Origin: Macrostomum lignano
Taxonomy: Eukaryota
Direction: 5' to 3'
DNA: 64,000 bases
Assembly: GCA_002269645.1 (NCBI GenBank)
Contig: NIVC01000990.1
Span: 1-64,000 of the forward strand
This document shows, piece after piece, positions 28,768 through 40,489 of the stretch. Positions within the stretch are counted from its first letter, which is position 1, and each line of letters opens with the position of its first letter. The position numbers and the translations under genes are program-made. The notes beneath the pieces are model-generated. The model was not told the origin of the DNA, ran no database searches, and worked only from the letters and a program-made list of their open reading frames with translations.

Positions 28768-28834
28768 TCAGTAGCCTAGTGCGGACAGCTCGTCGCTGAT
28801 TCGGCTCAGATAGCCGCTGTCCGGGTAGCCGTGG
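28768..28834 (-). CDS. DTX3L-like terminal exon
   Basis: (N)[21 protein letters not shown] is the conserved Deltex end GYPD..YL.RV..EL; acceptor cccgcag. Confidence 0.9.
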
Positions 28835-31800
28835 CTGCGGGATGCGTAGAGTAGAGAAATAATCAATTCTGTTTGACAGTCACGGACTCAGAACTGACCT
28901 GGCCTATTTATTCGAATCTGACCCAACTTGACCCAAACAGACCCAATTGACCCAACTTGACCCAAACTGACCCAATTGACCCAACTTGACCCAATTGACC
29001 CAAACTGACCCAATTGACCCAACTTGACCCAACTTGACCCAACTTGACCCAAACTGACCCAACTTGACCCAACTTGACCCAAACTGACCCGACCCAACTT
29101 GACCCAAACTGACGGCCCAAACTGACCCAACTTGACCCAAACTGACTCAAACTGACCCAACTTGACCCAAACTGACGGCCCAAACTGACCCAACTTGACC
29201 CAAACTGACTCAAACTGACCCAACTTGACCCAAACTGACCCAACTTGACTTAAACTGACCTAAATTGACCTACTAAAACCAAACTGGCCAAAATCAACCC
29301 AACTTGACCTAAACTGACCTAAATTGACCTACTAAAACCAAACTGGCCAAAATCAACCCAACTTGACCTAAACTGACCTAAATTGACCTACTAAAACCAA
29401 ACTGGCCAAAATCAACCCAACTTGACCTAAACTGACCTAAATTGACCTACTAAAACCAAACTGGCCAAAATCAACCCAACTTGACCTAAACTGACCTAAA
29501 TTGACCCAACTTGACCTAAACTGACCTAAATTGACCTACTAAAACCAAACTGGCCAAAATCAACCCAAATTGACCCAACGTGACCTACATTGACCCAACT
29601 TGACCTAAATGATCCCATATTGACCCAAATCGATCCAAAATTGACCTAAACTCACCTAACTTGATCCGAACCCAGATTGACCCAAACTGATCCTAACCTG
29701 ACCTAAACTGACCCAACTTGACGCAGATTGACCTAGTTTTCTCCAACTTGACCCAACCTGACCCAGAAAACTCAAAAACTTACTTGGGAGGTCCGCCATT
29801 AATCTTGGTCTTGTGGTGCAGGGTGTTCCACGTGATCGCCATGTTATTTCCGGTGGTCGCTGACTGGCCCACCTGGAATACGATTCGACCATTGAAGGCA
29901 GCCCGAAGGCGCTGTACAATGCCTCTGCCCTCTTCGTTGTTGGGAAAATAGGCCTCCCTGCTGATGCCCTTGTACTGCACTCCGTCCACGGTTCCGCTGG
30001 GAAAGGAGTACTTGATGACTATGGTGCCGTTAGAGCGATCGTAGCCTGTAAAAAGACGAATGAAATTAGATAATTCTGACAACGTTTAGACCGGAAGTGC
30101 CAGTGCTAATAAATCGTTCTTTGAATACCACACAGGCACAATCAATTCGGAAATACCTCAACCGGAAGTGGCACAATACATATAGGCTCTAATACTAGTA
30201 AATGACACAGTCGTTTATAAAATCGCAACCTAAACTCTAAGGAAGTGCTACAACTCTAAACCAACGCAACCGGAATTGGTCCAGTAGTCTATAAAATCGC
30301 GACCGGAAGTGCTACTGCTTCAAAAAAACACAACCGGAAGTGGCACAGTAGTTTATAAAATCGCAACGGGAAGTGCTACTACTCAAAAATAACACAACCG
30401 GATGTGGCACAGTACTCAATAAAATCGCGACTGGAAGTGCAATTGCTTTAAAATAACACAACCGGAAGTGGCACAGTAGTTTATAAAATCGCAACGGGAA
30501 GTGCTACTACTCAAAAATAACACAACCGGATGTGGCACAGTACTCAATAAAATCGCAACCGGAAGTGCAATTGCTTTAAAATAACACAACCGGAAGTGGC
30601 ACAGTAGTTTATAAAATCGCAACGGGAAGTGCTACTACTCAAAAATAACACAACCGGATGTGGCACAGTACTCAATAAAATCGCGACTGGAAGTGCTATT
30701 GCTTTAAAATAACACAACCGGAAGTGGCACAGTAGTTTATAAAATCGCAACCGGAAGTGCTATTGCTTCAAAATAACACAACCGGAAGTGGCACAGTAGT
30801 TTATAAAATCGCAACCGGAATTGCTACTACTCAAAAATAACACAACCGGATGTGGCACAGTAGTCTATAAAATCGCAACCGGAAGTGCTTCTACTCCAAA
30901 ATAACGCAACCGAAAGTGGCACAGTACTCTATAAAATCGCAACCGGAAGTGCTTCTACTCCAAAATAACGCAACCGGAAGTGGCACAGTAGTTTATAAAA
31001 TCGCAACCGGAATTGCTACTACTCAAAAATAACACAACCGGAAGTGGCACAGTAGTCTATAAAATCGCAACCGGAAGTGCTTCTACTCCAAAATAACGCA
31101 ACCGGAAGTGGCACAGTACTCTATAAAATCGCAACCGGAAGTGCTTCTACTCCAAAATAACGCAACCGGAAGTGGCACAGTAGTTTATAAAATCGCAACG
31201 GAAGTGCTACTACTCCAAAATAACGCAACCGGAAGTGGCAGAGCCCTTCCTCGTGTAATACAATTAAATGGCGATACAGAGATATTTCTAAAATCTTGGC
31301 CGAAGGTACACACTGGAAGGCAATTGATCTGAGCTCACCGGGCAGCTTGCGCTGATCCACTCGCTCTAGCATAGTCCCATTTGGCGGTTGATTCCCCACG
31401 GCCGGCCGGAAGCGCTGGAAGCAGAGAACGCATTTGCCGTCAGTTGGCAACTCGGAGCTGTTCAAGCGGTCCACGCACTCGCTGCACAGCTGGGTGCCGG
31501 CCGAGTCGCAGTGGAACGGCTTGGCTGGCCGATCGGCTGAGAAGTCCTCCGAGCAGATCGCGCAGGTGCCTGAAGCTTCAGCGGGATCAGCGTGGCCGGG
31601 GCGGTGGCCGGGGCAGATTCAAACTGCTGCTGATTATCCGGTTCAACTTCCATCGATTCGGCGGCCTCAGAGGCGACGACCGCGGCTTCGTCGGTGTCAG
31701 TGTCGACTTCGGAGTCAGGTGGCGGAGGGGCGGAGGCCAGCGAGACTGGAAATTGAGTTGGGTAGAGAGGGTTAAGAATGGAGGGTAAATAATGGGAAAG

Positions 31801-38284: not shown

Positions 38285-40489
38285 CTAAAATTATAAGTCA
38301 TTTGTATTTATTTAATTTAATAATAAACAAAGCTACAACAAAAATAGTTCAAACATACACTTTCAGGCAATATTCTAAATTATAAAAGTAATCTTATGAT
38401 ATTATAATTAATAATATCATTAAAAACCTAAAAGTCAACCTTTAAATAGACATAAAACATAATATTATTAAATTTATTTATTGCTTTGAAATCTTAATAA
38501 AGAAAATTAAGAATACTTAAATTAAAGGCTAAGAAAATGTTAATATTAAATGATAAATTTCAATTTGTAATGCCTAAAGAATGTGTAAAATGCATATCTA
38601 TTCTAAGTAATAGTTTTGGATTTAAACTTTCAAGTGGAAATATAGATATATAGGATAAATAATTAGTTTAGATAGCTATAGCATTACTAGAAGACAGTAT
38701 TAGGCCCTACTATATACAGCACCATTTAAAGGAACAATTTTTGTAATACATAGCTTGTAATAGCATATAGGCCTATTGCTCTTTGCTCATTAGAAAATGC
38801 ATATTAATTTTGCTGTTGTCAGAAATGCTATTACTCTAAGTCTAACTTCAATTTTGTATTTTATAATTATTTTTACACTCAAAAAGCAAAGTTGTAAAAT
38901 ACCTTTCGTTCGCATGAAAACTTTGGCTTGCGACTCCAAATTTTTATAAGGTCGAATAACACAGATAAATGACTCTGGAAACGAATACTGAAAAAAAGCA
39001 TGCAGTGCTAGCCAATGTGTTTCATTTGATTTAGTCAAACTACATTCTGAAAACTCCACCACAAAAGAAAACATTTTTAGTTTAAATACTGAATAAATGG
39101 AACTGCTAAAGCAAATAAAACTCTGACCCTAATATAACAGCTTTTCAGCAATTAACTGATGAGAACCGGGATTACTCTTGATTAGAATCGAAAACGAAAA
39201 ATCCCAAAGTTTCTTGTAAGCGCGATAAACTGAATTTTCTACTAGTTTTTATGGAAAGTATTATAACGCAATTTTTCATAAATGTTCTTTTTTAAATTTA
39301 TTGAAGTCCATAGGAGCAAACCATTATTAGAAACAAACTAAAGTCAGTAGTATTTTTTAACCTTTTATTATTACACAAATGACGTAAGGGTATATCGAAA
39401 CGGGCATAAAACATACGCTCGAGTATCTACGGCGGACCCAGTGGCACATCAGGTTGCTCCCAACGATGCATAGTAAAAATTCGCTATGTATGCAAACTAT
39501 TAGACCGATATCAAATGAGAAAATGATTAAGACGACCGGCCCTAAATACTGCAGCGTTATCAAGCGCAGGGGCGGATCCAGCAGGCGGGGGCCAAAAGGC
39601 CCATGGCCCCCTTCAGTCGCGGCCCAGTAGTGTTTTTGGTATAGCTGCATATATACATGTATGGCTTTACTCAGATCAATGATTTAAGACATATGTATAT
39701 ATATTATACATATGCACAATAATACATGACTACATGTATTTTAGTACGTTTACATGATATGTACATGTACTAAAATATATACATGTGCACAATAATCCAT
39801 AAATCTTCGCTCTCCCGACTTTTCTAACAATTTATGCAGGCCATAATTAACAATTTACACATTTTCATTACGTACTACTACGTTATAGTACCAACCATGA
39901 CATGCATGTGCATTTTCTTTTGCAATTTGCATGCATTCCCATGTTACAGTGTACGTGTTCGATCTAGGATCATTGCAGTCAAGGACCACTGGAAGTTACC
40001 GTTGTTATGAGTGTTGCGAATCTTGATAGAAAAAACTGTAACTTCTATAGTGGTGATCCATTGATTGCAGTCTTGAACTACATGTACATGTACTCTGTGA
40101 GGCTTTACATGGTCCTTATTTTTACTATTTAAGGACAATTTACTGTACTTCTTAGAGATTTATTTTTGCTAAGTTTCAGCAGCCAGTAACTGAGCCGGTT
40201 TTATTTATTTACGATATTAAGTAATACAGCTGTCACTTGCACCAATATAGTCCGCAAGGACAACTTACGTAACTTCAGTTGTTCGATAGTCCGGAAAAGT
40301 GATCCGACCTCGATCAGTCTCAACTTTTTCTCCTAATTTTTTACAGCTTTTATGATCGTGTATTGCTGTCACTTTTGTCTCCAAAAAGCCTAGGATTTGA
40401 CCCTATGGTTTGAGAGGTCGACCGCGGTGGAGAGGGTTTTGGGGCGGCCTAGAGAGCTCAGCCAATCAGAGTCGAGCTCTAAGTTATCA

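Follow-up and report, generated by a model that had tools for sequence, protein, structure and literature searches.

A Deltex-family E3 ubiquitin ligase gene of Macrostomum lignano with a putative embedded macro-like domain

The stretch of DNA analyzed here (the window) comprises 64,000 nucleotides of the flatworm Macrostomum lignano (contig NIVC01000990.1 of assembly GCA_002269645.1, positions 1 to 64,000 of the forward strand), and it carries on its minus strand a gene for a predicted Deltex-family E3 ubiquitin ligase. Eight coding exons run from 39074 to 28768, every intron has GT...AG boundaries, and the phases are compatible throughout. When spliced, the exons correspond one by one to UniProt entry A0A1I8GAK8 (742 amino acids, M. 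lignano) at 99.5-100% identity, and they also match the GenBank protein PAA77106.1 at ~100% identity. The locus had previously been interpreted from its letters by a model (referred to below as the sequence-only reading) as a set of phase-compatible exons encoding a fused ADP-ribose reader and Deltex ligase. The exon structure is confirmed by the UniProt match, the boundaries proposed at 37168/36582, 32954/32608, 38903 and 37802 and the stop at 28768 are all right, and the start codon at 39074 was found outside the range that had been given. The sequence of the gene is already public in UniProt and GenBank, where its product is automatically named "E3 ubiquitin-protein ligase" from the DTC domain. 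Neither the macro-like nor the RRM-like folds described below are annotated there.

Exon 1 (38903..39074) begins with an ATG at 39074-39072 (MFSFVVEF...) and encodes the first half of a predicted RRM/ferredoxin-like domain, which is completed by exon 2 (38199..38284, with AG/GT splice sites). These two exons match residues 1-57 (by tblastn) and 58-86 of A0A1I8GAK8, respectively, both at 100%. A second small domain of the ferredoxin/RRM-like type is assigned to exon 3 (37802..38101). Exon 4 (36582..37168) encodes an Ala/Pro/Gln-rich low-complexity linker and then, from ~36910, the N-terminal half of the putative macro-like domain, which opens with strand 1 bearing a conserved Asp. The C-terminal half of this domain (two helices and the strand RLHVC) and a further linker are encoded by exon 5 (32608..32954). 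Exon 6 (31339..31745, with an alternative acceptor at 31569) contributes an acidic linker, a RING-like finger (Cys1 codon 31564-31562 to Cys8 codon 31423-31421), and the beginning of the DTC domain. The DTC core, with its SATTG motif and the catalytic His of HHKT (equivalent to DTX2 His582), lies in exon 7 (29784..30045), and the C-terminus of the domain, with HGYPD (His594 equivalent) and SDELSALGY (Glu608 equivalent), is encoded by exon 8 (28768..28834), which ends in a TGA stop codon at 28770-28768.

The DTC domain, the hallmark of the Deltex family, is unambiguous in the sequence, and its catalytic residues are kept. The domain matches Pfam profile PF18102 over positions 2-132 of 133 (E=2.7e-39, 134.8 bits against a cutoff of 25). 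Among solved structures DTX3L (3pg6) is closest (E=3e-29), followed by DTX2 (6y22, E=1.3e-23) and the DTX1 RING-DTC. The motifs HHKT, HGYPD, and SDEL align with His582, His594, and Glu608 of DTX2 (6y22), and catalytic or ADP-ribose-contacting roles have been described for His582 and Glu608 (PMC7615817). The complete DTC domain predicted by the sequence-only reading is thus borne out by the profile and DTX3L matches. A Pfam scan of the full protein found neither a PARP catalytic (ADP-ribosyltransferase, ART) family nor a WWE family, and the C-terminus is the DTC domain; the claim that PARP catalytic and WWE domains are lacking is therefore upheld.

The region upstream of the linker was modeled separately with AlphaFold2 (AF2). 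Residues 1-186 (exons 1-3) gave two domains of the beta-alpha-beta type at a mean predicted local distance difference test score (pLDDT) of 65.6, with the block corresponding to exon 1 reaching ~80 and showing beta-alpha-beta-beta topology. Structures of tandem-RRM proteins (Prp24, HuR, Sxl, and NONO) headed the Foldseek matches of this model, although weakly (E ~2e-3), and no macrodomain was among the matches for residues 1-186. A second divergent macro-like fold had been proposed at 38903-37802; this candidate was rejected, as the region models as two RRM/ferredoxin-like domains instead. The RRM-like character of the N-terminus strengthens the comparison with DTX3L.

The 5' end of the gene may differ between isoforms. 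Exons 1 and 2 are present only in ab initio UniProt models, whereas the transcript-derived GenBank coding sequence begins at 38065 within exon 3, directly after the acceptor TTGCAG, with its first ATG at 38053-38051 (MLNFEAIAK...). Judging from this transcript 5' end, TTGCAG/38065 is probably an acceptor for spliced-leader trans-splicing, which suggests a shorter isoform, translated from Met 38053 and missing the first RRM-like domain. Exons 1 and 2 nevertheless retain ~30% identity to the N-terminus of a distant paralogue, A0A1I8GDN0. Because of this conservation and because they are well modeled, it is probable that one isoform or more uses them as coding sequence.

Two GenBank proteins, PAA77106.1 and PAA84102.1, begin in exon 3 and continue across the macro-like, RING-like, and DTC exons as far as the stop. 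For assembly Mlig_3_7, GenBank's annotation was built on an RNA sequencing (RNA-seq)-based, genome-guided transcriptome rather than on ab initio prediction (PMC5730564). Since these models join their exons, the macro-like and RING-DTC parts are on one mRNA, with transcript support coming from near-identical duplicate loci. The earlier proposal that one polypeptide combines a RING-like finger and a DTC domain with a macro-like fold therefore holds at the level of the transcript, and the two parts do not fall on separate transcripts. The same gene is found on GenBank contig NIVC01000764.1, where it is collinear with the window, introns included, at ~95-96% identity. This copy fits the large duplicated blocks that have been reported for the M. 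lignano genome (PMC5730564), and the window gene is one copy of a duplicated gene.

Residues ~268-470, the region between the low-complexity and acidic linkers, are predicted to adopt a fold of the macro type. The AF2 model of this region (mean pLDDT 58.8, predicted template modeling score 0.62; the other four models, 40-49) has its strands and helices in the order seen in macrodomains, and the half encoded by exon 5 is its best-modeled part (block pLDDT 70-83). A Foldseek search of the PDB with this model, which by the tool's own warning can yield meaningless matches when a model is of low confidence, returned 34 matches at E<=1e-3, and almost all of them were macrodomains. The best was macrodomain 2 (MD2) of PARP14 (3q71; E=4.5e-5, template modeling score (TM) 0.50, 20% identity). 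The others included macroH2A1.1, macroH2A1.2, PARP14 MD3, PARP9 MD1 and MD2, MacroD-type and viral macrodomains, and the SPX entries in the list are macroH2A carrier fusions. We consider it likely, on the strength of this model, that residues ~268-470 form a three-layer alpha/beta/alpha fold of the macro type.

The domain appears to be confined to this lineage. When 1.84 billion representatives were searched exhaustively with HMMER, the macro-like region matched only two clusters, and M. lignano is the source of both. One is the gene described here and the other is the paralogue A0A1I8GDN0 (628 amino acids, ~34-38% identity), which has the same domain order; no genomic locus is on record for it. 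Core motifs conserved between the two are D20, D31-x2-IV, LSLxFGLA, ILFxALPND, and G-x2-LP-x-W. As far as sequence relatives can be detected, the macro-like domain is thus lineage-restricted, with relatives only in M. lignano. A word-index search was also made, but it was lossy: with the macro-like region as query it gave no match and missed even the identical UniProt entry. In the same lossy search the full protein returned only the M. lignano cluster, and the RING-DTC portion returned only two short metagenomic DTC proteins. Metagenome and Logan assemblies contain short proteins (~260 amino acids) that have a DTC domain alone, with ~40% identity to that of the flatworm.

The interpretation that best accounts for these results, to which we assign a probability of roughly 0.6, is that the locus encodes a lineage-restricted, DTX3L-like Deltex E3 ubiquitin ligase with an embedded cryptic macro-like domain. 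Its order of domains would be two RRM/ferredoxin-like domains, a low-complexity linker, a divergent macro-like fold, an acidic linker, a variant RING, and a canonical DTC domain, a layout reminiscent of mammalian DTX3L joined to the PARP9 reader. Recent work has shown that Deltex RING-DTC ligases place ubiquitin on ADP-ribose and on the ends of nucleic acids. In the proposed mechanism, the RING-like finger of the flatworm protein would recruit the E2~ubiquitin conjugate, and the DTC domain would bind an ADP-ribose moiety or, as in DTX3L, the 3' end of a nucleic acid. The His-Glu pair of the DTC domain would then activate the ADP-ribose 3'-hydroxyl (or the nucleic-acid 3' end), and ubiquitin would be transferred onto it. 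Selection of substrates may fall to the macro-like and RRM-like modules within the same chain, a task for which the mammalian counterpart relies on PARP9, whose macrodomains target DTX3L from a separate protein. The ADP-ribose reading, the possible part in innate immunity, and the "Rosetta stone" character put forward by the sequence-only reading are conjectural.

A number of observations weigh against this interpretation; they concern the RING-like finger, the ligand pocket, the reading frame of exon 6, the macro assignment itself, and the literature, and are taken in that order. The RING-like segment has eight Cys/His residues in the pattern C-x2-C-x13-H-C-x7-C-x2-C-x14-C-x2-C. It scores below every Pfam RING threshold (zf-RING_2 E=0.19-0.44), and in its weak alignment with the TRIM32 RING (E ~0.08-0.1) the usual position of the His ligand is empty while a His precedes the third Cys (H-C rather than C-x-H). 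The same FHC arrangement is found in A0A1I8GDN0, and for this reason we regard the finger as a conserved variant rather than a product of decay. Of the RING claimed by the sequence-only reading, then, the eight potential ligands and a weak resemblance to TRIM32 (E=0.08) stand, whereas the subthreshold profile score (zf-RING_2 E=0.19) and the shifted His set it apart from a standard RING.

The register of the pocket was taken from an hhalign match to the verified macroH2A1.1 sequence together with the alignment with A0A1I8GDN0; the hhalign match covers 26 columns with E=0.055 and a probability of ~1% and is not significant. In this register, the strand-1 Asp is kept in both paralogues (SDLT or RDIT). 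The Asn of the NAAN motif is kept in the window protein (VPSN) but lost in A0A1I8GDN0. Loop 1, where macrodomains have Gly-Gly-Gly, reads Glu-Phe-Gly in the window protein and Asn-Phe-Gly in the paralogue, and loop 2, although longer (G-N-N-L-P-L-W), still has its first Gly and an aromatic residue, Trp. The motifs singled out in the sequence-only reading (the Asp of SDLT kept, VPSN for NAAN, EFG for GGG) are in the same register as the weak macroH2A1.1 match. In macroH2A1.1, a Gly-to-Glu change at the second glycine of loop 1 abolishes ADP-ribose binding. Because of this precedent and the Glu-Phe that occupies both glycine positions of loop 1 in the window protein, hydrolase activity seems very unlikely and canonical binding of ADP-ribose doubtful. 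The Glu-Phe-Gly loop is also why the domain, though almost certainly no hydrolase, may have a non-canonical mode of binding an adenine nucleotide. We hold it somewhat less likely than not that the domain binds ADP-ribose. The strong conservation of LSLxFGLA between such distant paralogues indicates that this surface has some function.

These features of the pocket give rise to one of the two most durable alternatives, in which the domain is derived from a macrodomain but no longer binds ADP-ribose. The protein would then be a DTX3L-like ligase for nucleic acids or other partners, with no coupling of reader and ligase, and its RRM-like and macro-like domains would serve as modules for nucleic-acid binding, scaffolding, or oligomerization. 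We think this possible but rather unlikely. The Glu-Phe-Gly or Asn-Phe-Gly of loop 1, the absence of the Asn from the paralogue, and the RRM-like N-terminus are all in keeping with it, as is the fact that the best DTC match is DTX3L, the RING-DTC of which ubiquitinates single-stranded nucleic acids. Structures of macroH2A1.2 and macroH2A2, which are macro folds without ADP-ribose binding, are moreover among the Foldseek matches. Arguing for a ligand, on the other hand, are the adenine-contacting Asp and the aromatic residue of loop 2 (the Trp in G-x2-LP-x-W), which are present in both paralogues, and the strong conservation of LSLxFGLA across paralogues that share ~34% identity, as would be expected of a working pocket more than of a decaying one. 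At the opposite pole, the macro-like domain could be a re-specialized but working reader, recognizing, for instance, a mono-ADP-ribosylated protein or nucleic acid or the hybrid ubiquitin-ADP-ribose mark. We hold this to be unlikely as well, and somewhat more so than the loss of binding.

The preferred interpretation, a complete DTX3L-like ligase, also has to contend with a frameshift in the window copy. Relative to NIVC01000764.1, exon 6 is one C short between 31593 and 31592, and it is otherwise identical over 431 aligned bases. All database proteins use the long exon 6 from 31745, which encodes the acidic linker. In the window the missing C shifts the frame of this long exon and leads to a stop ~40 codons past the deletion, such that the standard isoform ends before the RING-like finger. 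The shorter exon 6 adopted by the sequence-only reading, from the acceptor at 31569, keeps the frame, but no database model supports this acceptor. The missing base could be a mistake of the assembly, or it could be a real lesion by which this duplicate was inactivated. If the deletion is real, the window copy would be a pseudogenized duplicate whose protein ends after the macro-like domain and lacks the RING-DTC. The loss of a single base from an exon that is otherwise identical (431/431) to its counterpart, the resulting stop upstream of the RING-like finger, and the large duplicated blocks of M. lignano, which would relax selection on one of two copies, speak for such a fate. However, a one-base change in a run of CC is a typical long-read assembly error, the remaining exons are undamaged and do not differ from those of the other locus, and the in-frame acceptor at 31569 could restore the frame. 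On balance we regard pseudogenization as a minority possibility, with about the same standing as a macro fold that has lost its ligand.

Less probable still is that the macro assignment is an artifact of a poor model and that residues ~268-470 form another lineage-specific alpha/beta domain. The sequence searches would favor this view: no Pfam Macro match was obtained even at E<=10, and neither phmmer nor a two-sequence profile search found any macrodomain in the PDB. The AF2 model was built from only two sequences, strand 1, residues 52-87, and loop 2 fall below a pLDDT of 50, and given its mean of 58.8 (40-49 for the other four models), Foldseek's warning about low-confidence models applies. 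The structural matches are loose as well, with TM values of only ~0.5 and root-mean-square deviations of 5.5-7 Å. Yet a random poor model would not be expected to return a nearly pure list of macrodomains from many subfamilies at a probability of 1.00, and the model of the N-terminal region retrieves another class of fold, at weaker E-values. The macrodomain family is also matched by the sequence in which strands and helices follow one another and by the register of the Asp, Asn, and Gly motifs. The macrodomain that the sequence-only reading placed across 36582-37168 and 32608-32954 is, in sum, retained as a fold match to a low-confidence model and unsupported by Pfam or PDB sequence matches; of the two signs that might have spoken for it, a profile match is absent and a fold match is present.

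The base composition of the gene changes sharply along its length. GC content at third codon positions (GC3) is 0.17-0.32 in exons 1-3 (exon 1, 0.32; exon 2, 0.17) as opposed to 0.71-0.79 in exons 4-8, and introns 1 and 2 have only 15-22% GC. The break sets the RRM-like part off from the rest and does not separate the macro-like exons from those for RING-DTC; the 5' part may be chimeric in origin, or the break may mark a local compositional boundary. That gene prediction has falsely fused two adjoining genes, one for RRM and macro domains and one for RING-DTC, is highly improbable and was ruled out: this sharp break and the ab initio nature of the UniProt models would be compatible with a false fusion, but the break separates exon 3 from exon 4, the exons for the macro and RING parts are alike in composition, A0A1I8GDN0 has the same layout, and the transcript-derived GenBank open reading frames cross the junction and are continuous from exon 3 to the stop.

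The introns of the gene are rich in repeats, and those other than intron 4 are taken up by microsatellites and tandem arrays of 15 and 64 nt. Intron 4, which splits the macro-like domain, contains a 33/34-nt satellite array that is parted into two segments (36377-36589 and 33103-33535) by a degenerate non-LTR (long terminal repeat) retrotransposon. This element, on the minus strand at 33789..36311, encodes an endonuclease and a reverse transcriptase with in-frame stops (Exo_endo_phos, E=1.8e-9; RVT_1, E=2.7e-16 in Pfam). It is also found at the duplicated locus on NIVC01000764.1 and is older than the duplication, as it is common to both loci. Most of introns 5-7 is made up of tandem arrays (30241-31240, 31812-32529, and 28919-29765), the repeat units of which measure 64 nt (15.6 copies), 15 nt (~49 copies), and 10/59/89 nt. 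Microsatellites of the (ACAG/AGAC)n type at 23411-27782 and 37198-37783 are up to ~4.4 kb long and produce long spurious "CLSVCLSV" and "TDRQ" open reading frames on both strands. Downstream of the ligase gene and also on the minus strand is a large multi-exon cadherin gene (FAT/CELSR-like, ~289-19183), which is likewise present at NIVC01000764.1. A 300-nt direct repeat (328-627 and 9849-10148; 99% identity, 9521 nt apart) duplicates one of its exons and stems either from segmental duplication or from an artifact of the assembly. In the 10 kb upstream of the ligase gene at NIVC01000764.1 there is no gene call.

Literature searches, made without an architecture search across eukaryotes, found no description of a macro-RING-DTC fusion, no mention of Mlig011245 or Mlig011146, and no functional or expression study of the gene; the latter is the last of the points that tell against the preferred interpretation. 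How Deltex RING-DTC ligases are aimed at their substrates is not yet settled, and mammalian DTX3L depends on the separate macrodomain protein PARP9. A natural chain that combines a macro fold with RING-DTC would, if real, support the view that macro-mediated targeting is intrinsic to the ADP-ribose-ubiquitin pathway and would show the pathway itself to be older than vertebrate interferon biology. Should the domain prove to be a re-specialized reader, nature would have combined reader and writer of ADP-ribose-linked ubiquitylation in a single chain, and the protein would provide independent "Rosetta stone" support for the PARP9-DTX3L unit as well as a minimal system in which to study it. M. lignano, with RNA interference and transgenesis, could serve as a compact model for macro-mediated targeting. 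If, on the contrary, the macro-like domain binds no ADP-ribose, the gene would be one more lineage-specific Deltex paralogue.

Several known systems share parts of this architecture. RNF146, a WWE-RING E3 that depends on poly-ADP-ribose, follows the same logic, in that a RING E3 is joined to a module that binds ADP-ribose. It differs in that the module is a WWE domain and not a macro fold, there is no DTC domain, and protein lysines rather than ADP-ribose are ubiquitylated. The macrodomains of PARP9 and PARP14 (MD2 type, ADP-ribose binders) and of macroH2A1.1 are the top structural matches of the modeled domain, and in the register used above the window protein retains their first-strand Asp and the Asn of NAAN. 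The flatworm domain departs from them in its identity of only ~12-20%, the lack of a Pfam Macro match, the Glu-Phe-Gly of loop 1, and the longer loop 2, and unlike the macro-PARPs PARP9, PARP14, and PARP15, the protein has no ART or WWE domain after the macro-like fold.

Closer to the ligase module are DTX1, DTX2, and DTX4, which have a RING-DTC with the equivalents of His582, His594, and Glu608 and carry an ADP-ribose-related targeting domain in the same chain as the ligase. Targeting in DTX1, DTX2, and DTX4 falls to WWE domains arranged in tandem, which bind poly-ADP-ribose, and in the flatworm protein a macro-like fold would take the place of these. The closest comparison is with DTX3L, in which an N-terminal RRM and then KH-like domains precede the RING-DTC, the latter ubiquitinating single-stranded nucleic acids; together, PARP9 and DTX3L resemble the RRM-KH-macro layout of PARP14. 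Like DTX3L, which provides the best DTC match (3pg6), the flatworm protein has a finger, RING-like in its case, directly before a C-terminal DTC domain, no WWE domain, and an N-terminus that is predicted to be RRM-like. DTX3L has five KH-like domains between its RRM and RING and no macrodomain of its own, gaining macrodomains by binding PARP9, whereas the flatworm ligase has a shifted His ligand in its RING and appears to carry a macro-like fold in the same chain.

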